64,000 nt of DNA, from positions 593,238 through 657,237 of the forward strand of contig NW_005434669.1 of assembly GCF_000315625.1 (NCBI RefSeq). Direction: 5' to 3'. The position numbers were made by a program, and so were the translations under genes. Origin of the DNA: Guillardia theta CCMP2712. Taxonomy: Eukaryota; Protista; Cryptophyta. The notes under the pieces are model-generated. The model made no database searches. It saw nothing but the letters and a program-made list of their open reading frames with translations, and was not told where the DNA came from. Position 1 is the first letter of the stretch, and every line of letters begins with the position of its first letter. Below are positions 46,265 to 58,913 of this stretch, one piece after another.

Positions 46265-46948
46265 ACCCGCTCGCAAATGTACAGAGGATCTCTAGCTATC
46301 AGTAGATCTGCCCGAAATGTCAAATCGGGAGAGCCTGCTGTAGAGGGGAGCTCAATTCTCCCTTTCTCCCTCCTTTCTAGTCCATTCCTTTCTCCTCTCC
46401 TTCTCTCCTCCTTCTCTCCTCCTTCTCTTGTCTTCCTCGGCCCGCATTTCTTCGCCTAGTGGAGGACCCATGAGCCGCTTGAAAGTCCCATCACCCCACC
46501 CCATCACTTGCAATGAGTATCCCAAGTACCGGTGGAAGAGAGAAAATGGAGTACCCCCACCCTGAGTCAAAATGACAAGCGATCACGATGAAAGGACAAG
46601 CAAGAGGAGGGGGAGCAAGTAGGGAGCGAAGGGAGCGAACAAGGTAGGTGGGGATAGCCATAGTGGTCAGGAGAGGATGTGATAATGCTTAGGGAGCAGG
46701 GAAGGGAAGAAGCATGCAGAGGAAACGAGAGACGGTTGAAGTCGTGGGAGTGAGAGTGATGTATGAGAAAGGAAACGACCCTGCCAGTGATCTTTTGATC
46801 GTGTGATACTCCACAACTTATTTCTCTTCTTTCCTCCAGGATTCGTCGTTTTGTTTCTGCTTGACATGTCTGCGATTAGACTGTGGGTTGTCACAGTTGT
46901 CTCTGCAAGACCTTGCATGTGCGGCAGCGAGTGAAATCACCTCCCTTC

Positions 46949-49093
46949 ATGGCTTCCGTTTGTCTCTCACGCAAAGGGCTTCCTCTCAGCCTCTACGCCC
47001 CGTGGGTGCTTGTTTGCTTCCTCGCTCTCTTCCATGATGGGGCAGTCTCAACTTGTCCGCTCGGCTACTTCAACCTGACAAACTTCGAAAGCACTCGTTG
47101 CATCATGTGCGCTGCTGGCACCTACAGCGCCACGAATGATTCGCTATCATGCACTTCCTGCCCAGCAGGAACGTATGGGACCCAACCTGCTGCGAGCTTC
47201 TGTCTCACGTGCTCTCCTGGCACCTTCCAACCTCAGATTGGACAGACTTTCTGCGATCAATGCTGGAAGGGTTACGCCTGTCCGCGGCCGGACATAGGAT
47301 ATCCAGATCCTTGCGTCGTTGGGAAATTTTCTGTAGGTGGTCTTTCAGCTTGTCAAGATTGCCCCCAAGGTCAATTCAATGATCGCACCATTGCTTCCTT
47401 CTGTCAGACATGTACTGGCGGAACGTTCTCCTTACAGGGAAGCTCAAACTGCACCAAGTGTCAACCAGGAACGTACTCTCTGGCTGGAGCAAGTACTTGC
47501 AGCAGCTGCCCCTTGGGAACGTACAACGAGATGGCAGCACAGACGGCGTGTGTCTTGTGTCCTGTCGGGATGTCGTCCAACATTTCGGGTCAATCATGCT
47601 ACGCTTGTCCCGTTGGTAAGTATTCGAATGCTCAGCGCCTTTGCTTGTCTTGCAATCCTGGGACCTACGGCAACACAAACCAGAGCTCAGCGTGCAGCAA
47701 CTGTCCTCTAGGGCAGTTCAGTATGATCTCTGCCTCGTCTGTCTGTTCAGTCTGCGGTTCTGGAAAGTATTCCGACAGAACAGCTCAGAGCTTTTGCTCT
47801 GATTGCGCGACTGGAACTTTTTCTGTTGCTATAGGTCAATCTTTCTGCTCTCTGTGTCAGTTGGGAAGCTACAACTCGAACACTTCGCAAACATCTTGCT
47901 CGACATGTGAGGTTGGGACTTACAACAACCAGAGCAAATCTTCTGCTTGCAGCTCTTGCGCGCCCGGGTATTTCAATGGAATCATCGGAGCGACGGCATG
48001 TGCTGTGTGCTCCAGAGGATTTTACAGCAACACGAGTGGAGTTTCGGTATGTTCGGCTTGTCCGTTGGGAACGTACGGAACAGCACAAGGCCAAAGTCAC
48101 TGCCAGGCATGTGCGAGAGGAAGTTACGGCAACTTGCTCAATTCTTCTGCTTGCTTGGATTGCGCACCGGGAACTTTTGCGGCCAACATAAGTCAGAGCA
48201 GCTGCCTGGCATGCCAGCCCGGGTCCTTCACTGTCTCCTCCAGACAATCCTCATGCTCCTTGTGCCCCGAGGGATCCTTCTCCAACTCCAGCGGCAGCAC
48301 CGCCTGCCTTCACTGCCCAGCTTTGACCGTCAGCGCTGCACCAGGCAGCACAAGCTGCTCGAGCTGCCCACGAGGCAAGTATCAGCCGGCGTCAGAGAGC
48401 TCCATCTGCAAAGACTGCAGCATCGACGTCATCCTCAACTCTCCCCAGCTGTGCCAGTCGAGCTTTGCCTCTCTCATCCCCTGCGTAGCAGGAGAGTACA
48501 TGTCGCGTGAGCAGACGTCGCTGACGCTCGTGGAGGATCACGATCTTGGCTCCTGTGGGGGTGGAGGAGGCCCATGGAACATAACCTCGAGCGGAGGAGC
48601 CATCAGCAGCAACGAGTTTCTCTTCCTCAACGGCTGGACGTGCAAGTGGGACTTCTTGACGCGCTTCAACCTTGGCATCAACATTACTCGGTTCCGAGCC
48701 GACCATGCTAGCGCGGCGCTCTACCTCGAAGAGTGGGACGGGCGTGGCAGGTACCTCAGCCTCTTGCAAAGTCAGGTGGGGACCATGTGGGACCTTCCGA
48801 TGACTTGGGAGTATCTTCATCCTCGCGTGGGTGAGTACCGCAGAGTCTCTCTCCTCCTCGCTACCTTCCACGACTCCGGATCCCTCCTCATTCCAGCGGG
48901 ACTGCGAGCTTCCTGGAGGTCCTACGGGCCCGCCATCTGCCGCGCGTGCCCTGCTGGGACTTTCTCAGCTGCTCCTCTCAGTCTGGCCTGCTCTTCCTGC
49001 CCCTCCGGCACCTTCTCTGGCTCCGGTCAATCCTTCTGTAGTCAGTGCCCCCCCGGCAAGACTTCCCCGGCCGGTTCGGGCGAGTGCGCATGA
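46949..49093 (+). CDS. Secreted cysteine-rich protein with GCC2_GCC3/ephrin-receptor-like repeats and a CUB-like insert
   Basis: Signal peptide (..PWVLVCFLALFHDGAVS), many CxxCPxGTY/F repeats, and a non-repeat insert CGGGGGPWNITSSGGAISS..CKW..GINITRF..GLRASW; AATAAA shortly after the stop. Confidence 0.85.
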   Translation: MASVCLSRKGLPLSLYAPWVLVCFLALFHDGAVSTCPLGYFNLTNFESTRCIMCAAGTYSATNDSLSCTSCPAGTYGTQPAASFCLTCSPGTFQPQIGQTFCDQCWKGYACPRPDIGYPDPCVVGKFSVGGLSACQDCPQGQFNDRTIASFCQTCTGGTFSLQGSSNCTKCQPGTYSLAGASTCSSCPLGTYNEMAAQTACVLCPVGMSSNISGQSCYACPVGKYSNAQRLCLSCNPGTYGNTNQSSACSNCPLGQFSMISASSVCSVCGSGKYSDRTAQSFCSDCATGTFSVAIGQSFCSLCQLGSYNSNTSQTSCSTCEVGTYNNQSKSSACSSCAPGYFNGIIGATACAVCSRGFYSNTSGVSVCSACPLGTYGTAQGQSHCQACARGSYGNLLNSSACLDCAPGTFAANISQSSCLACQPGSFTVSSRQSSCSLCPEGSFSNSSGSTACLHCPALTVSAAPGSTSCSSCPRGKYQPASESSICKDCSIDVILNSPQLCQSSFASLIPCVAGEYMSREQTSLTLVEDHDLGSCGGGGGPWNITSSGGAISSNEFLFLNGWTCKWDFLTRFNLGINITRFRADHASAALYLEEWDGRGRYLSLLQSQVGTMWDLPMTWEYLHPRVGEYRRVSLLLATFHDSGSLLIPAGLRASWRSYGPAICRACPAGTFSAAPLSLACSSCPSGTFSGSGQSFCSQCPPGKTSPAGSGECA

Positions 49094-49448: not shown

Positions 49449-50564
49449 ATGGATAACGTGCAAGGAAGGCTGACGAAGCTCGTCCACATCAGCAAGCGAG
49501 CTTGCGACCAGTTGGGCATTCTCGTGCGATCCATCTACAGCTCCATCGACGAGCAAACAGCCACCGTGAAACAAGATAAGAGCGCCTTCACCATCGCAGA
49601 CGGTCTCGTGCAGGAGCTGCTGAGCGAGCTGTTCGAGGGCAAGGTGAAGACGATCGTGGGGGAGGAAGACGATGCGCAGGTGAGGCTGGACAGGAGGCCG
49701 ATGACGGTAGGATCGCTGTGCGTACCGGAGCAGCACGAGAGGATCATCGAGAGGAGCCGGAGAGGGATGCAGGAGCTGGGGCGAGAGCTGGAGGACGGGG
49801 GGTACCAGGACCTGACGGTGTTCATCGACCCGATCGACGGGACGCGAGAGTTCTCGACCAAGAAGGGAGAGCAGTGCAGCATCTGCATCGGCTTCTCGGA
49901 CGGAGGGGGGCAGGCGGTGGCGGGGCTGGTGTACCGCCCGATCCCAGAGGGGTGGGAGACGAGCTGGGAGGAGGAGCGGGCGGTAGAGGCATGCACCTGG
50001 GGAGGAGGGGCGAGGTCGGAGGGGACGGCGGTAGGGCGGCTGGATAGGAAGGAGGGAGGGGGAAGAGGCTTCCTGACAACCAACGGGAAGATCTCAGGGT
50101 TTGTGGAGAAGCTGATGGGAGAGCTGAAGGAGGAGCGAGTGAGCTCGGGGGGAGCTGGGAACAAGATGCTGATGCTGCTGGAGGGGAAGGGCGGGATGTA
50201 CATTCAAGACAGGGGAGTGAGCCGGTGGGATACATGCGCGGCACAGGCAGTGATCGAGGCGTACGGGGGGCTTCTATGCCGACTGGATCGGTATCTGGAG
50301 GAGGAGAAGCTTGTGCCGTACACGTACGTGAAGGGAGAGAAGAACGCGGACTTTGTGAAGGGGCTTGCGGAGCTGACGGCATACAACGCGCGGGAGTGGG
50401 GGGAAGGAGGGGAGAGGAGGAAGGCGATGGAGGCGAGGGAGGTGAAGGCGTACTCGAACCTGAACGGGCTTCTGGCGGTAAGCAAGGAAGGGAGGGAGAG
50501 GCTGGGGGAAGTGCGGGAGGCGATGAGGAGGGTAGAGGAGGAGGAGGGACCTTCATACGACTGA
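49449..50564 (+). CDS. BPNT1: 3'(2'),5'-bisphosphate nucleotidase (BPNT1-like, FIG/inositol-monophosphatase superfamily), intronless standalone copy
   Basis: FTIADGLVQ, VGEED, FIDPIDGTREF, GGAGNKMLMLLEGK and WDTCAAQAVIEAYGG. GGAGNK..EGK and WDTCA are typical of the BPNT1 branch. Confidence 0.85.
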   Translation: MDNVQGRLTKLVHISKRACDQLGILVRSIYSSIDEQTATVKQDKSAFTIADGLVQELLSELFEGKVKTIVGEEDDAQVRLDRRPMTVGSLCVPEQHERIIERSRRGMQELGRELEDGGYQDLTVFIDPIDGTREFSTKKGEQCSICIGFSDGGGQAVAGLVYRPIPEGWETSWEEERAVEACTWGGGARSEGTAVGRLDRKEGGGRGFLTTNGKISGFVEKLMGELKEERVSSGGAGNKMLMLLEGKGGMYIQDRGVSRWDTCAAQAVIEAYGGLLCRLDRYLEEEKLVPYTYVKGEKNADFVKGLAELTAYNAREWGEGGERRKAMEAREVKAYSNLNGLLAVSKEGRERLGEVREAMRRVEEEEGPSYD

Positions 50565-53500
50565 GGGAACTGAACTCTGAGACCCTCAGCTTGAAGGTTT
50601 AGGGTGGTAGGGGGTCCGTAGTACATATGGGGTTGTCCCTGAACAGTATCTTTGTAACTTCAAATTCAAGTATTTCTTCTCGATTGCTGTTCTGATTATT
50701 TCGAATATTGAAGAATAATTTGGATTACTCATCACCAAATCTTGTCGCTTACGCCCCAACTTGACCATCTGCCGCCATGCAACACTTCACCCCTCCATCT
50801 CCCTACGACCACCCCACCTTTTCAGAGAACTTTACCCACCTTCGCTGTTCAAAGCCACGATCCGGTACCCCTCCACTGGCTACCCTACCCCTGTCTCCTG
50901 GTCGCTTTTTCCCCCGACTCCAGACTTCCTCCATGGCGAAGTCGCAAGAACGGTGGACCGCAGTAGGCGACAGCCGCATGCTCGCACCATCTTGCTCCCT
51001 CGAACCTGACAGGACAGATACTAGCCTCTAACAGCCCCCTACTCTCCTTACCCGCCCTCCCCTCCATAGCCCCCCTCCTTCCTCCGCCTCGTCAAGATGC
51101 TCGTGCAGTATGCTGCTGGGCAGTGATCGAGAGGGTTTTCTTGACCATACATGAGTGGATCGCGAGCTCTTGCCTAGTCACATGGGGCTCTCACTGTCTG
51201 CTCTCCTCTCACGGGACCGTGGCACTCGACGCAGGGACACGCCTCTCCCAAGACGAGGCAGTTCAGCGCAAGGTGACAGCTTCGATTCAGGAATGGTGGA
51301 GGAGACCTGGTCACTTGACTCTGGCTCGACGAGTTTCGAGGAGCGGTCGAGGTATCATGACTTAGAGTGGTCGAGCTGCTCCGTCTTGCGCTATTCGCTG
51401 CTTCCTGCACTGGCTGATGGGGTAGAACGCGAGATGGAGAATTTGCTGCATTGCCGAGTGAGCACGCGTTGTTGGAGCTGTAAGGCAAGGTCGTGGATGC
51501 GTTTTGACCCCACTGATGTTTCTTCTTGCAGCACAAGGAGACAAGATCCATAACGAGAGCGTTGATGGGTGGGCTCGTGCTCGCTGTCTGCTTCTTGGTT
51601 GCCATATGTCTGTATCAATCGTTTCCTTGCAAGGAAGAATGCGTGATATCCGTCTTGATCATCCGGCACGGCGAGAAGCCTTTGAACGCGTCAAACTCAA
51701 GACTCAGCCCTCTTGGAAGGGCTCGAGCTGCATACCTAGCTCGATGCGCATCAGGGAGAACGAGGGCACTAGCTCGCGGCCCTCCGACGATGCTGCTTGC
51801 TGCCAAAGCAAACATGAGCAACGGTAGCTCGTTCAGGTCCCATGACACCCTCGTCCCTCTCTCGGAGAGCCTTGGAGTACCTCTGTACAGCAACGTGAGC
51901 AAGGACGACTTGAACGGCTTCCTGGAGCTGGTGCTCTCAGCTCACTGTGGGGATACGATCTTGGTCGCCTGGGAGCACTTTACGATTCCTCTCCTTGTCC
52001 AGGCGCTGGGCGTGCCGGAAGATCCTTACTTCTCTCAGTGGCCGAAGACTTGCAACTCGCTCTACTTTCAAGAACCGAGGCACCTGGAGGCCGACAGCAG
52101 CTGCTACGATCTGATATGGCGCATCTCCCTTGATTTGAGAAACTCAAGTGATGGACCCTCGAGAACTGCCTCACGCGTGACGGAGTTTCATCAAGGTAGG
52201 CGGAGGGTGTGAGCAAGGAGAGACAAGTTGTTTCATCTAACAAGATGTGACAGGTTTCGGCGGGCGGGAGGGCAGCGACTGTGCTCAAGATCTAGATGTA
52301 AATTATTGAAACGACTTGAACATGTAAATAGAATTCGTGCAAAACATGGTCTCTGCGAATCTGCTCTCAACTGCAACTGCCTTCTAATCCTATCTTTGCC
52401 ATCAGACAAGATTTCCTTCCATGCCCTAGTCCACCGGGACATCCTTTTTTTTTTCAATAAGCTGCCCTCTCTCCCCCTTCAGTCGTATGAAGGTCCCTCC
52501 TCCTCCTCTACCCTCCTCATCGCCTCCCGCACTTCCCCCAGCCTCTCCCTCCCTTCCTTGCTTACCGCCAGAAGCCCGTTCAGGTTCGAGTACGCCTTCA
52601 CCTCCCTCGCCTCCATCGCCTTCCTCCTCTCCCCTCCTTCCCCCCACTCCCGCGCGTTGTATGCCGTCAGCTCCGCAAGCCCCTTCACAAAGTCCGCGTT
52701 CTTCTCTCCCTTCACGTACGTGTACGGCACAAGCTTCTCCTCCTCCAGATACCGATCCAGTCGGCATAGAAGCCCCCCGTACGCCTCGATCACTGCCTGT
52801 GCCGCGCATGTATCCCACCGGCTCACTCCCCTGTCTTGAATGTACATCCCGCCCTTCCCCTCCAGCAGCATCAGCATCTTGTTCCCAGCTCCCCCCGAGC
52901 TCACTCGCTCCTCCTTCAGCTCTCCCATCAGCTTCTCCACAAACCCTGAGATCTTCCCGTTGGTTGTCAGGAAGCCTCTTCCCCCTCCCTCCTTCCTATC
53001 CAGCCGCCCTACCGCCGTCCCCTCCGACCTCGCCCCTCCTCCCCAGGTGCATGCCTCTACCGCCCGCTCCTCCTCCCAGCTCGTCTCCCACCCATCTGGG
53101 ATCGGGCGGTACACCAGCCCCGCCACCGCCTGCCCCCCTCCGTCCGAGAAGCCGATGCAGATGCTGCACTGCTCTCCCTTCTTCGTCGAGAACTCTCGCG
53201 TCCCGTCGATCGGGTCGATGAACACCGTCAGGTCCTGGTACCCCCCGTCCTCCAGCTCTCGCCCCAGCTCCTGCATCCCTCTCCGGCTCCTCTCGATGAT
53301 CCTCTCGTGCTGCTCCGGTACGCACAGCGATCCTACCGTCATCGGCCTCCTGTCCAGCCTCACCTGCGCACTGTCTTCCTCCCCCACGATCGTCTTCACC
53401 TTGCCCTCGAACAGCTCGCTCAGCAGCTCCTGCACGAGACCGTCTGCGATGGTGAAGGCGCTCTTATCTTGTTTCACGGTAGCTGTTTGCTCGTCGATGG

Positions 53501-53579
53501 AGCTGTAGATGGATCGCACGAGAGTGCCCAACTGGTCGCAAGCTCGCTTGCTGATGTGGACGAGCTTCGTCAGCCTTCC
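49464..53579. repeat. Large inverted repeat: arms 49464-50564 and 52479-53579 (about 1.1 kb, >99% identical), about 1.9-kb spacer
   Basis: The arms are reverse complements from GGAAGGCTGACG to the TGA stop; six nucleotide differences found by eye. Confidence 0.95.
51097..52309 (+). CDS. Histidine phosphatase superfamily (phosphoglycerate-mutase-like) protein with type II membrane anchor; 5' exons uncertain
   Basis: TM LMGGLVLAVCFLVAICLY, catalytic LIIRHGEKP, LSPLGRARA, RSHDTLVPL, ILVAWEH, YDLIW; last exon GFGGREGSDCAQDLDVNY*. Confidence 0.82.
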
Positions 53580-55305
53580 GGCAGTAGGTTTTTGGTACCA
53601 CATCTCAGAAATCTTTGCGGCGCTTGATGACTCTTCGATTGTCGAAGAAGCTTTCATCTCATAGGTTGTAAGCGGCCTATTCTGAAATGTAAGCAGACAC
53701 TGTTGGAGTAACGCCTCGTCTCGTTTGCTTATTTCAGAGCCACTTCTATCGAAGCTCACGTCACGTGAACCTGGCTGAAAAGAAGATGAGAAGGAGACTT
53801 GAGGATGATGAGGTCAAGATTAGATGTTGATTACTTGTCCTTGAAACACGCCTGCTTACCTCGTGCGTGAACTTGTAGAATGGAAGCCATTCCGAGGCGA
53901 ACAAGTCATCACTCTGCACTCTCCTCATAACGTTTTCAACGTAATCGGCGTATTCCTTCGGACCTTCAGATCTTGCCGTTACAAGAAATATCAAAGACCT
54001 TAACGTCGGTCGCAATCCATAAAATCCCTCCAGGCTTCAAGCATTTGTGCATGTGATATAAAATCTAGATGCCCAGCGTGAGTAGATCAAATGAAGAATA
54101 GAGACCCCACATTGCTTCGGATGATCCTTCGGGAGATATCCTTTTTCGATGGCCAAGGATCTGGAAAGAACACCCAGATCTGAACGTAAAGAGAGCTTCA
54201 GCCGACTCAAGTCGGGGACGAGACCTCAAGCTCAACCTGATCTAGCGAGGCTTGCGGCACATGCTCGCTGAGCAGTCGGGATGCATCTCCGCGCACAACC
54301 TTCACGTTTTCAAGGTTTTTCTTCGGAGTTGAGTCAAAGAAAGGATCAACATGGATTCATCACACCTTATCGAGTTCAGCCAGGCAGTGTGCAATGCTAG
54401 TCTTATGAATCTCCACGCCCAAGAAGTTTGTCTGCGACATGTAACGCTATGGCTCAGGTCTCTTCAGATGGTCGCACTTGCGGAAACGTCAGCGACATCT
54501 CTCTGAGACTTTCGCCTCTCCCGAAGCCCAACTCCAAGACCTGTCAGGCGTTAGACTCCTGCAAGCATCCCTCCCGTCAGCTGCGTGACTTGCCGTGGGC
54601 TGACTAGAGTTTGCAAAGAGCCAGCTGAAGTCAAGCTGCTTGCCTGTAGCAAGTTAAGCGGCTCATCGAATTCGATCGTCTGATGACAACCGTGCTGGAG
54701 GTCTGCTCCAAACTTGCCCCAGAGGCTTCTGAGTATCCGTCGCTGAGCCGGAGTGATCACTTGCTGTGCCATGGTACTCAGACAAGCCAGACCATATGAT
54801 GGGAAGCACCTGTCGTTTCTTGTACCATGCTCGCGACAACGGTGACTCCTCTTCCCTCTGCCGCCGCTGCAGCCGCTGCGAACTGCGTCATCCACAGAAG
54901 ACTATTGACCCTCGACGAAACCTTGCAGGCATCGGACAAGCTCTCCTCCTGGTTAGAGTTCGAAGGGAACAATCGAGGAGCTATGCTGTCGAACGCGTTT
55001 TGACCATGCTTACGGAGGCCAGGGAGAGCAGCGGCAGTCGAGAACGAATTCGGACTTTGCCGTCGGATCTCTCCAAACCAGGGAGTCTCCGCGAAACAGC
55101 ATGTAGTCCGGCTCAACAATCCTCTTCCTACGCAGTCAACTCGAGACAAGAACCTTGAGGGAGCGAGTCTCCCGTGGCAGCCTCCAAGGAACGAGCACAG
55201 ACCGATTATCCCAACCTTGCACAACGTCATCCTCTCCCATCCATGACGATAGCTTCCTTCTCCTATGCTCCTGGTCCCCAGCCCGCACTTGACGAAGGCT
55301 TCCAT
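52479..55305 (-). CDS. trmB: Fusion gene: bacterial-type tRNA (guanine-N7)-methyltransferase TrmB (intron-rich) plus C-terminal BPNT1-like phosphatase (intronless)
   Basis: Spliced TrmB: ITPAQRRILRSLWGKFG../VLELGFGRGESL../TNFLGVEIH../NVKVVRGDA../IWVFFPDPWPSKKDISRRII../LKPGGILWIATDVK/EYADY../..RPLTTYEMKA..ISEMWYQK. It continues with no stop or intron via PTA into GRLTKLVHISK.. within ORF 52479-53759. Confidence 0.82.
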
Positions 55306-55310
55306 CTTGA

Positions 55311-55365
55311 ATCCTCCTCCTCCTCCTCCTCCTCCTCCTCCTCCTCCTCCTCCTCCTCCTCCTCC
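55311..55365. repeat. (CCT)n microsatellite immediately 5' of the trmB start
   Basis: Directly visible. Confidence 0.95.
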
Positions 55366-56086
55366 TTCCATCGGGCAAAAGTACCGGCCTACCCCCTCAC
55401 CCCCCACCCCCACCCCTCAAAGTTTCCGAGGGACCCCACCTATCCTTCTCCCTTTTTATGTTGCAATCGTACCCCCCCTCAGTTGCACGTGCAATGTAGT
55501 AGAACTGCGCACATGCTCTGAGTTGAAGAGGACGAGGACGAGGACGAGGACGACTGAAGCGTAAGTGTGCTCGAGCTCCGGCCATGCTCGAGCTCCGACC
55601 GATCACAGAGGACATGAAGGAATCTTGTCTGATTGCTGCGCTACCTCGTTGAAGTTGAAGTGCGAATTCCTGGAATGGAGCCCTTGCTGTGCATCCAAGA
55701 ACAGATTCACCTTCATAACAACAGGTACATGCTGAAAGCGAGATGAGATTCCATGTTCTGAACGAAGATTCCTATGATGTTTGGAAATACAATGATAGGA
55801 AGAGTCTGATCTTTTCGTGAAGTCACAATGTTGTTTCCTTGAGGAATTTTTCTTTCTATGCCTTGTTGACTTTTCAAGTAACACTTCAAGAATGACATTG
55901 TTTTCAGGTTTTACAGTTGAGTGTATATCATGTTATTATGGAAAAGTCATAAGTATGTTTTATGTGTCGAAGTTTAAAGGCTTTCATTAAATACGACAAG
56001 TAATCAACGAATGTTTCTCTGTCGACTGCATTGTTAGTTTAGTCTATCCCCAGCTCAAGACTCTCTCAACTCTCTGTACATAATAT

Positions 56087-58221
56087 CTAATCTATCTTGA
56101 TTGAAGAATAAATCTTGCGAACAAACGCAAAACAGCTGGCGAATCCTACGAATCCACAGAGTACAAACATGGCGTAGCACAAGATGAACAAGTAACTGAA
56201 GTGCCGAGTCAGACGAAACACAACAACAAACCATGGATTACCCGAAGAAGATGCAGGTAGCCATGAGATCGAAGACAGTCGCCGGATGAGATCTTGAGAA
56301 GTAATGAAAGCTTCCGTAGAGAAACAAGTACACCGCAGTCGTTCCTGCTGTGCAGAACGAGCGCCACCACCACCTGCAGCACACAAAACAATCACTCCAG
56401 ATGACCTGCAGGAGCCTCGTCATACCGATAGTCCTCCGCACAGAGCTGGAGATAGCACAAGACAATCGCGATCTCAACACAGGTGACGATGAGGATCAAG
56501 AAGACTACAGCCAGGAAACCGAAAACGTAGTAGAACCTGTGCTGCCAGATGGAGGACAAGATGAAGAACATCTCGACGAAGACAGCTCCAAACGGCAAGA
56601 GACCCCCAGCCATCGCTGAAACCCACGGCGACATGTACCACATCTGAGGCGGAATCTGTCTCGGAATGGCGCTAACTGAGCAAGGCACGGAGAAAGCATC
56701 TTTCCTGAATCCGAGGTAGGCCCCGAAGAAGATGAGAGGAAGCGAAATGCCAAACCACAACAACATAAGCACGATCAAGGTTCCGAACGGAACCGCTGTC
56801 GATGATTGCTTGAACCAGGCAACCAAATTTACAAGGAAGAAAACCAAGAAGCAAACTCCTGGGAAAAGCAAAGCTGTCATCAAGGTTGCTTTGAAGTGAT
56901 TTGGCTCCTTCACGAATTTGCAAAACCTTGCAGAGACATAGCCAGCCGGAACTCCCATCAAGACGTAGAAGAACAAGACTGCAGAAAGGAGGGAACCACG
57001 ATTTGCCGGAGAAAGGAAACCCAAGGCAGCGAAGAGCAGCGTCAGGATAGACATGATCAAAAGCTGCACACCCGTTCCTGCACACACTGAAAGCAACGTT
57101 GCATGTGAAGGAGGACGAAACACATCATTGTAAACAAGCTTCCAGCCCGTTTCTTCCCTCATCTCACGGTTCGCCTCATACTTGTCCTCGGCGCTCAGAG
57201 CACTTTCATTGTATCGGGCAAAATCCTTTCGGAGAATGCGGGTCATGATGAGACCCACGATGCCAGTCAAGAACATGAGGATGACGAGGGAGTTGACGAT
57301 GGAGAACCAATGGATCTTGTCGTCCGTCATCTGCAAGTAGACGTCCCAGCGTGACGCCCATTTGATGTTGGTACGTTCCCAGATGACGTCATACGTCCAG
57401 ATGACCTCGCCGCCTTCCTCCGCATTGATCACTTGCGGGACGTGCGGTTGGAATTGACCGTTAGGAGGCTGGACACAGGTGGCGAGCTTGACGTAGGGCA
57501 CCTCAGTCTCGTCCCACTTGCCCGTGTAGTGATGCTGGATCGAGAAAGGAACAACTTGAAACCCGATGATGAAGTTGCCGTTGTCTTCGGAGTGGCTTGA
57601 ATGAGCCTCATCAGACGAGTCGACTGGGTGATACAGGATCTTGAATCTGAGGTGATTGTTGAGCACAAACTGATCCGCGTTGGACGTGGGGTTATCCTTC
57701 TCTGCTTCACTGGTCTCAAGCTTTCCACCTAAGGGATAGCCGAGGTTGTAAGTTTCAACGGGATCATCTGGTTTGTCCTCATAGGCAAATGTCTGCATTT
57801 CGGCCAGTGGGAGGGAATCCAAACGCATGTTCACTCTGTAGTCCAAGATTGCAAAATCCTGAAACTCCTCCATTTCCTGGGGTGTGTACCTCTTTCTGCA
57901 CAAGGTTTTGCAGTACTCAGTGACCTTCATCTTTGCCTGAAACGCACTCGTATGAGCTCTTTCTCCCGTCAATGCTTCTCCCAGGTTTTCAGGAATGTCT
58001 CTGACCCTCTTCGGCGCACAGAAAGGGAGTTGGTAATAGTCGAACTGGAGGGGGGTTTCTGTTGAAACAAGAGTCTGAACCTTGATGTTCACCGGCTCTC
58101 CGTTCTTAAAGGCACGAGGAGCAACACCAGGCAGGTAGAACCCAGACGACATGTGTACCTCGCTCAGAAGCATCGCCAGCGCCAGCGCCATCGCTCGCTT
58201 CAGCCCTGTCGGTGCCGCCAT
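56087..58221 (-). CDS. Transmembrane 9 superfamily protein (EMP70/nonaspanin, TM9SF2/4-type), 3 exons
   Basis: Signal peptide then FYLPGVAP, ENLGEAL, WASRWDVYL, IHWFSIVNS, EETGWKLVYNDVFRPP, GGLLPFGAVFVE, EDYR/WWWRSF; C-terminal KID (KxD/E Golgi-retention motif). Confidence 0.96.
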
Positions 58222-58913
58222 CACGCTGCCAGCTGCTGACTCACCTCTTCGGTTACAGTGCCGCTAACCTGACCGTTACTGGCATCAGTCCGATCGGCCC
58301 GGCCAGTCACCAGTGGCGGACCGGACCGTGACCTGACTTGAAAAACATCGGGCCCGCCCGCCGCCGCCGCCGCCGCCGCCGCCGGGCCCGGCCTGAACTG
58401 AACCGTGCCACGGTGAACCTTGCTTTACTCAAAGTTAAGTTAAAAATCAGTACGAGGACAATAATGAGAGTCGACTGAGGACTCAGGCCGCTGGGCCTGA
58501 CACTGTCGCACAGGCCAAACGGCGAGAAAAGAAAGACAGCGAGAACCAAACCCAATCCTGCCGACTGCTGTCCCCCAAACTTAAGTGATACGTGAACGGT
58601 CACAGTGGCCGCTGGGGGGGGGGGGGCGGGCACACGCGGCGGCGGCAGGCCGGGCTGCTGGGGCCCGGCCAGGCCCACCACTGAGACGGGCTCAGCCGCG
58701 GCCTTATCTTCAAGCCTCCGCCGAGGCTCCGAGGCTGAACAGGCCGCCGCCCGGAGTCCCCCGGACTCGGGCCCGGGGGGCTCCGACCGCCTCAGTGCGG
58801 CCCGGCCACCGGCACCGACAGTGATGAGTGACGTGATGACTCGGTGAGATGATGAATGATGACAGACCTTGTCAAGACGAACCTGTTTTGGTTTGTTTGA
58901 ACGAAACTTGAAA

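Follow-up and report, generated by a model that had tools for sequence, protein, structure and literature searches.

We analyzed a 64,000-nucleotide stretch of the genome of the cryptophyte Guillardia theta CCMP2712 (contig NW_005434669.1, positions 593,238 to 657,237), which we call the window and number from its first letter. On its minus strand, at positions 55305-52479, lies a single gene whose 11 exons form one frame of 770 amino acids when the spliced coding sequence (CDS) is translated from the ATG at 55305 to the stop codon at 52481-52479. The encoded protein comprises, in order, a leader of ~145 amino acids, a complete bacterial-type TrmB domain, a Pro-Thr-Ala linker, and a BPNT1-like phosphatase domain. 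A previous examination of the letters alone (here, the sequence-only reading) had described an in-frame fusion of the tRNA methyltransferase TrmB with a phosphatase of adenosine 3',5'-bisphosphate (pAp) at 52479-55305, and its coordinates, motifs, and linker were all correct. The gene is confirmed to be real, expressed, and unannotated.

Structure and expression of the fusion gene

The first four exons of the fusion gene lie at 55305-54922, 54875-54810, 54763-54690, and 54642-54593; the next four at 54539-54478, 54431-54366, 54320-54237, and 54179-54111; and the last three at 54064-53998, 53954-53860, and 53774-52479, all on the minus strand. Exon 11 is a continuous open reading frame (ORF) that runs from the C terminus of TrmB (RPLTTYE ... 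EMWYQK) through the three linker codons (53580-53588) into the Inositol_P domain. The junction thus falls inside one unbroken exon, as the sequence-only reading had held, and the peptide across it is ISEMWYQKPTAGR. The linker reads PPA in a metagenome relative and PTT in Hanusia. At the 5' end, an extension of 22 codons (55306-55371, minus strand) is possible from an in-frame ATG at 55371; the transcript contig of run X1 begins at ~55337, short of that ATG. These positions are occupied by a (GGA)n microsatellite of ~18 units, which is in frame with the upstream ATG and would be read as poly-Gly; as a repeat, it was passed over when RNA runs were mapped.

The reference annotation was taken from G. 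theta CCMP2712 scaffold JH992969.1, which is 100% identical to the window over 21 kb. At the fusion locus it contains only a 287-amino-acid Inositol_P model that starts at 53603, and the TrmB exons are not covered by any gene.

When public RNA runs were mapped on 52100-55900, ten spliced joints on the minus strand linked the TrmB exons to the last exon across introns of 43-85 nucleotides. After the allowed slides of 1 nucleotide, nine of these introns are GT-AG and one (54592-54540) is GC-AG. The spliced joints and the X1 contig together support the whole CDS. This contig, 3,767 nucleotides long, is spliced, extends from 55304 to 52252 with 0 mismatches, and passes through the junction. An intron-containing contig of run X11 (53382-55166) also bridges the junction with 0 mismatches and carries the bases specific to this copy of the phosphatase, which forms the minus arm of an inverted repeat (see below). 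A contig of run X2 crosses the junction but has two bases of the other repeat arm; a switch of k-mer path or a strain allele is a possible cause, and we do not take this contig as independent proof. The two words sampled from a 65-nucleotide stretch centered on the junction were present in 10 runs from 6 studies. These lines of evidence agree that the fusion is real and expressed.

Run X16 was the sole raw RNA run; it is biased toward 3' ends and does not cover the junction. Its minus-strand 3'-end reads stack at 52354-52607, and they mark a 3' untranslated region at 52350-52478. At the low depth of this run, no other 3' end was seen inside the fusion gene and none after TrmB. The two ways in which the sequence-only reading could have failed here, a misassembly and transcripts that end right after TrmB, find no support: the junction is spanned by contigs, and X16, at its low depth, has no 3' end at that point. 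From the contigs, rather than read by read, one full-length mRNA is very likely.

Besides the fusion or in place of it, the locus might give two products, with an internal promoter or start codon (the Met of EMWYQK) yielding a separate phosphatase and other processing yielding isoforms with TrmB only. The reference models the minus copy as a phosphatase of 287 amino acids from 53603, and the contigs are compatible with overlapping transcripts. However, TrmB has no stop codon, X16 (again at low depth) shows no 3' ends inside the gene, and the spliced TrmB exons and the phosphatase are found in one contig at uniform identity. We therefore consider two products from this locus to be distinctly unlikely.

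Features of the two enzyme domains

The TrmB (Methyltransf_4) domain occupies 53589-54763 on the minus strand, that is, exons 3 to 10 and the first 62 codons of exon 11. A local BLASTP search with the E. coli TrmB sequence of the annotated K-12 record matched residues 146-354 of the spliced protein with 31% identity over 212 columns (E = 3e-32). When exons were compared individually with the Pfam profile PF02390, five consecutive exons matched it colinearly (profile positions 6-25, 26-46, 49-74, 76-97, and 100-120); each score is below the cut-off of 24 bits, and they sum to ~71 bits. The S-adenosylmethionine-binding and catalytic motifs are complete: LELGFGRG, GVEI, RGDA, FFPDPWP..RR, LKPGG, ATD, RPLTTYE, and EMWYQK are all present. 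The first three of these supply the binding motif I (E/D-x-G-x-G-x-G) together with the acidic positions in GxE and xxD. FPDPW with its downstream Arg pair reads FFPDPWPSKKDISRR, and both FFPDPWPSKKDISRR and RPLTTYE are kept in the metagenome relative (L001) and in Hanusia.

Among characterized enzymes, we compared this half with the single-subunit E. coli TrmB/YggH (b2960), which it resembles over E. coli residues 23-226 at the identity given above. Both have an N-terminal Q-rich helix, LE(I/L)GFG, GxE(V/I), FFPDPW..RR, and a C-terminal T-x-(F/Y)-E in the same order. In contrast to E. coli TrmB, the fusion protein has the ~145-amino-acid leader and an insertion of ~30 residues before RPLTTYE, and it lacks a stop codon, so that the frame runs on into the second enzyme. 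The TrmB half is more like this single-subunit enzyme of bacteria than like Trm8/Trm82. On these grounds, the first enzyme is predicted to be a bacterial-type tRNA methyltransferase that forms 7-methylguanosine at position 46 (m7G46).

The phosphatase domain (52482-53579, minus strand) was assigned by Pfam and by sequence and fold searches of the PDB. It matches Inositol_P (PF00459) with 89.4 bits against a cut-off of 27 (E = 3.6e-25) and contains the motifs GEED, DPIDGTRE, GGAGNK, and WDTCA. GEED, DPIDGTRE, and WDTCAA align with the metal-binding and catalytic residues of BPNT1 and are invariant in an alignment of relatives. By sequence, the nearest solved structures are BPNT1 of rat (1JP4; E = 2.4e-18) and human (2WEF; E = 6e-17), and INPP1 and CysQ trail them (E = 1e-6 to 1e-7). 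The AlphaFold model that we used for the fold search covers the last exon only; its mean predicted local distance difference test score is 72.8, and the phosphatase core is mostly above 80. The matches were, in order, 1JP4, 2WEF, and SAL1 (8F9Y), then INPP1, Hal2, and CysQ (top Foldseek E = 1e-13).

BPNT1 is a Li+-sensitive phosphatase of pAp and inositol 1,4-bisphosphate, and its GEED, DP(I/V)DGT, WDTCA, and GGAGNK motifs are conserved in the fusion. The two differ in that their identity is only ~20-25%, that the model of the fused domain has extra low-confidence stretches, and that this domain stands 3 residues from TrmB. Arabidopsis SAL1/FRY1 and yeast Met22/Hal2 share the superfamily and the expected reaction, and SAL1 is the third-best structural match. 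They belong, however, to a subfamily other than that of the fusion, and SAL1, which is sent to organelles, has a transit peptide of its own, whereas the fused phosphatase has the leader of TrmB. The second enzyme is predicted to be a BPNT1-like 3'(2'),5'-bisphosphate nucleotidase, or pAp phosphatase, with pAp, 3'-phosphoadenosine 5'-phosphosulfate (PAPS), or inositol 1,4-bisphosphate as a possible preferred substrate.

An inverted repeat at the probable origin of the fusion

The sequence-only reading did not include an inverted repeat of which the phosphatase half of the fusion is one arm and a stand-alone phosphatase gene the other. The repeat is 1,104 nucleotides long, and its plus arm (49464-50567) and minus arm (52476-53579) have 7 differences (99.4% nucleotide identity). 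The stand-alone gene, GUITHDRAFT_64161 (49449-50564, plus strand), is situated 3 kb from the fused copy, in the opposite orientation and without TrmB. It consists of an intron-less, leaderless ORF of 371 amino acids that begins with MDNVQ followed by GRLTKLV, and after the first five residues its product differs from the fused phosphatase at 3 positions. Only 355 nucleotides separate its ATG from the upstream gene. The published 284-amino-acid model of GUITHDRAFT_64161 drops two in-frame internal stretches of this ORF, and both reference phosphatase models (284 and 287 amino acids) are shorter than their ORFs (L002, 10001-11116 and 13031-14155). Both phosphatase CDSs (52500-53500 and 49500-50500) have a strong purine and G bias on the coding strand, with a GC skew of ~0.3-0.5, and the skew peaks at the two repeat arms are mirror images of each other.

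The similarity between the arms begins exactly at the first codon past the PTA linker and stops 3-5 nucleotides beyond the stop codon, and the flanks of the arms are unrelated. Because the limits of the repeat coincide with the junction and with the end of the CDS in this way, we infer that the phosphatase CDS was duplicated locally, in inverted orientation, onto the 3' end of a TrmB gene.

Relatives and distribution of the fusion

A metagenome contig from ENA (L001) is colinear with 54332-51936 at 94.9% nucleotide identity and matches G. theta in its exons, introns, and junction. A comparison of the two gave a ratio of nonsynonymous to synonymous divergence of 0.29 in the TrmB part (170 codons) and 0.17 in the phosphatase part; synonymous divergence is 0.15 and 0.07, respectively, and the introns are 90% identical. 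In Hanusia phi, a transcript-derived protein (P0002) contains FFPDPWP, the spliced join THE/SGSRDV, and the junction ELWYRKPTTGRL. The intron that precedes the last exon is missing from it, either through splicing or because the Hanusia genome does not have it, and two small introns farther upstream are retained. Its phosphatase part is full length and intact, with 86% amino acid identity to that of G. theta. Since the fusion is common to Hanusia phi and a close relative of Guillardia, it is neither a misassembly nor an oddity of one strain, and it is older than the Guillardia/Hanusia split. Its presence in Hanusia phi goes against the absence from related cryptophytes that, for the sequence-only reading, would have reduced it to a recent accidental chimera.

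Near-identical inverted repeats are known to cause errors in assembly and in de Bruijn paths, and the X2 junction contig does carry two bases of the other copy, as would be expected if the repeat or the junction were a misjoin. The junction is nevertheless present in the reference and in Hanusia phi, separate studies provide contigs of it both with and without introns, and a diverged relative shows it in a metagenome that was assembled independently. We rejected misassembly on this evidence and regard an artifact as extremely improbable.

At the nucleotide level, 28-31 differences (~2.7%) separate the fused L001 orthologue from each of the G. theta copies, whereas only 7 separate the G. theta copies from each other. 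Because of this difference, and because the fusion predates the Hanusia split, either gene conversion has probably homogenized the paralogues or the stand-alone copy has recently been re-derived from the fused one. The close identity of the paralogues (99.4%, against a ~2.7% difference from the L001 orthologue) also fits a near-neutral chimera in which only TrmB is needed and the phosphatase tail is a passenger, kept by conversion from a selected paralogue; conversion might likewise give a phosphatase with half the synonymous divergence of TrmB (0.07 against 0.15). Yet the open junction and an intact, full-length phosphatase persist as far as Hanusia phi, at 86% amino acid identity; none of the three taxa has gained a stop codon where TrmB ends; and homologues with plastid leaders in other algae (see below) point to a need for an organellar isoform. 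A passenger phosphatase seems unlikely to us, although it deserves to be kept in mind.

We screened 58 homologue contigs besides L001 for TrmB, 18 loci among these having at least 2 kb of upstream sequence. With G. theta and E. coli TrmB as queries, tblastn found no TrmB outside L001 in the six contigs of the nearest non-Guillardia homologues (50-55% identity) or in 53 metagenome loci from an alignment-based scan. Five intron-containing fragments (L057-L060 and L062), with segments 68-81% identical, have no 5' parts and are uninformative about the fusion. A single-protein metagenome scan gave no matches. When the TrmB portion of the Hanusia transcript served as query, the only match was the query itself; the protein collection searched contained no full-length fusion model, and no stand-alone orthologue of the fusion TrmB was retrieved from other cryptophytes. 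Apart from partial Guillardia and Hanusia entries, the TrmB-phosphatase architecture was absent among the top matches listed for two very large protein collections, and none of the papers listed by a literature search described such a fusion. The sequence-only reading knew of this architecture in no other organism; it does occur in Hanusia phi and L001, but in none of the 58 other contigs. The combination of TrmB with a pAp phosphatase thus appears to be new, although both families are well known, and as far as these sequences indicate, it is probably restricted to the narrow Guillardia/Hanusia lineage.

Among the best 150 cluster representatives are long proteins in which the N terminus carries a different domain (START, Fapy glycosylase, or cupin); Pfam detected Methyltransf_4 in 0 of 10 that were among the longest. 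Three proteins of the same subfamily from other organisms (P0154, P0201, and P0155) are predicted to be fused with START, Fapy-DNA-glycosylase (H2TH), and cupin domains, and these may be real fusions or merged gene calls.

A candidate organelle-targeting leader

The leader of the fusion protein (~145 amino acids; exons 1 and 2, 54810-55305, minus strand) may, by its hydropathy and composition, be a bipartite targeting signal. A single hydrophobic segment, MTLCKVGIIGLCSFLGG, spans residues ~26-44, with a region rich in Ser and Arg behind it; Pfam found no domain in the leader. In leaders of red-type complex plastids, a Phe follows the cleavage site of the signal peptide; for stromal proteins, the rule for this +1 position is Phe, Tyr, Trp, or Leu after the signal peptide, with the transit peptide following (PMC12136025). 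In Arabidopsis, a second homologue of the Trm8/TrmB family, At5g17660, is predicted to be chloroplastic (PMC2956550).

Leaders also occur on the phosphatase itself. In a set of 200 homologues with alignments that extend to the beginning of the domain, 88 have an N-terminal stretch shorter than 25 residues. Extensions of 50-120 residues are present in many of the others, in which a hydrophobic signal peptide is followed by AAAFH or SAFA motifs. Among these, the algal proteins P0070, P0080, and P0120 have a phosphatase 40-55% identical to that of the fusion, with a signal peptide and an "AAAFH" transit peptide of their own and without TrmB. Because many homologues carry leaders of the complex-plastid type, such algae presumably often make an organellar isoform of the phosphatase.

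Neighboring genes

Divergent from the fusion gene, a spliced, unannotated RNA is very highly expressed from 55499-56100 on the plus strand; its contig depth in X1 reaches ~14,000, against ~40 for the fusion gene. It has an intron at ~55727-55909, its longest ORF is only ~80 amino acids, and no Rfam match was found for it. The 5' ends of this RNA and the fusion gene are at most ~160 nucleotides apart, which suggests a bidirectional promoter. Beyond it, one flanking gene is intron-less and encodes an EMP70/TM9SF protein (56392-58224, minus strand; Pfam E = 6e-179).

Between the repeat arms lies a gene convergent with the fusion gene (51526-52344, plus strand). Its product contains the RHGE motif typical of histidine phosphatases but had no Pfam match at an E value of 0.01. 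Its intron is at 52194-52251, and its poly(A) site at ~52344 abuts the 3' end of the fusion mRNA. On the other side of the stand-alone phosphatase, a gene for a large Cys-rich repeat protein (46883-49093, plus strand) ends 355 nucleotides before it.

Discussion

We favor, as somewhat probable, an explanation in which the gene encodes a bifunctional protein that carries a pAp phosphatase behind the leader of TrmB into an organelle, with the two phosphatase copies homogenized or re-derived. Targeting to an organelle is suggested by the leader on TrmB, the bacterial type of this TrmB, the leaderless copy of the phosphatase nearby, and the homologues with plastid leaders. In the Guillardia/Hanusia lineage, an inverted copy of the phosphatase CDS would have landed on the 3' end of the TrmB gene and replaced its stop codon. 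Later, gene conversion would have held the two copies at 99.4% identity, or the stand-alone copy would have been re-derived from the fused one. TrmB would methylate G46 of organellar tRNAs, and the fused phosphatase would remove pAp formed in the organelle, each enzyme probably acting independently of the other. The fusion may have been retained because it delivers the phosphatase to the organelle, beside a leaderless copy that is presumably cytosolic; other algae would reach the same end with a leader on the phosphatase itself.

Several points weigh against this explanation. The cleavage site of the leader and its +1 residue are ambiguous, with no Phe at an obvious +1 position, and any choice among the complex plastid, the periplastidial space, and the mitochondrion as the compartment of the fusion protein is a guess. 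In the TrmB domain, an Asp aligns with His151 of E. coli TrmB, a residue that we take to be functionally important. The internal Met of EMWYQK, which is the start used by the 287-amino-acid reference model, could yield a separate phosphatase. Support that spans the junction consists of assembled contigs rather than single raw reads, long reads, or peptides; because contigs can merge overlapping transcripts, as the X1 contig does with the convergent neighboring gene, the evidence for a single mRNA falls short of read-by-read proof. Finally, if selection acts on the stand-alone copy, gene conversion from it could preserve the fused phosphatase with no selection on the fusion itself.

The sequence-only reading had proposed that the fusion couples tRNA modification to RNA turnover controlled by pAp. 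Its yeast background holds: Rat1 and Xrn1 degrade tRNAs that lack m7G46, and this decay is prevented when Met22 is lost, because pAp then accumulates and inhibits the nucleases (PMC7473580). By analogy, the fusion could tie formation of m7G46 to local removal of pAp and so tune the surveillance of hypomodified tRNA by 5'-3' exoribonucleases. This idea draws on the Trm8-Met22 logic of yeast, in which accumulated pAp blocks rapid tRNA decay (PMC7473580), and on the junction and 3-residue length of the linker, which are kept in three taxa. Rapid tRNA decay, however, is a nuclear and cytosolic pathway, whereas the TrmB of the fusion is of the bacterial single-subunit type and has an organelle-style leader. 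Furthermore, the fusion is limited to one narrow lineage, an unfused and leaderless copy of the same phosphatase lies next door, and no paper listed by our literature search connects these enzymes in a fused form. Elsewhere, members of this phosphatase family are fused to START, Fapy-glycosylase, and cupin domains, and the unrelated nature of these partners suggests that its fusions are opportunistic. For these reasons of compartment, lineage, adjacent copy, and unrelated partners, we do not tie the fusion to rapid tRNA decay, and we give functional coupling little credence. Of the two interpretations in the sequence-only reading, a phosphatase that borrows the leader of TrmB fits the evidence best, whereas coupling to tRNA decay has no support beyond the analogy with yeast.

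A more specific form of coupling would make the fusion a Rosetta-stone protein of a cryptophyte organelle or periplastidial compartment, where one protein might install m7G46 and clear the nuclease inhibitor pAp and thereby physically link modification of the tRNA body to 5'-3' exonucleolytic quality control of tRNA. We rate this version slightly lower still; if true, the logic that Trm8 and Met22 follow in yeast would have a second, independent instance. Although its prior is low, the parallel with yeast makes the fusion an attractive and cheap test case for functional coupling.

For G. theta, these results correct the annotation, which omits the TrmB gene and splices both phosphatase models wrongly. 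More generally, the locus offers a clean natural case of the birth of a fusion gene, in which the boundary of an inverted local duplication coincides exactly with the junction and in which the stand-alone and fused copies stay nearly identical while orthologues diverge. If the leader is a signal for the plastid or the periplastidial compartment, then the phosphatase would be an enzyme retargeted by the capture of another protein's leader together with that protein itself.

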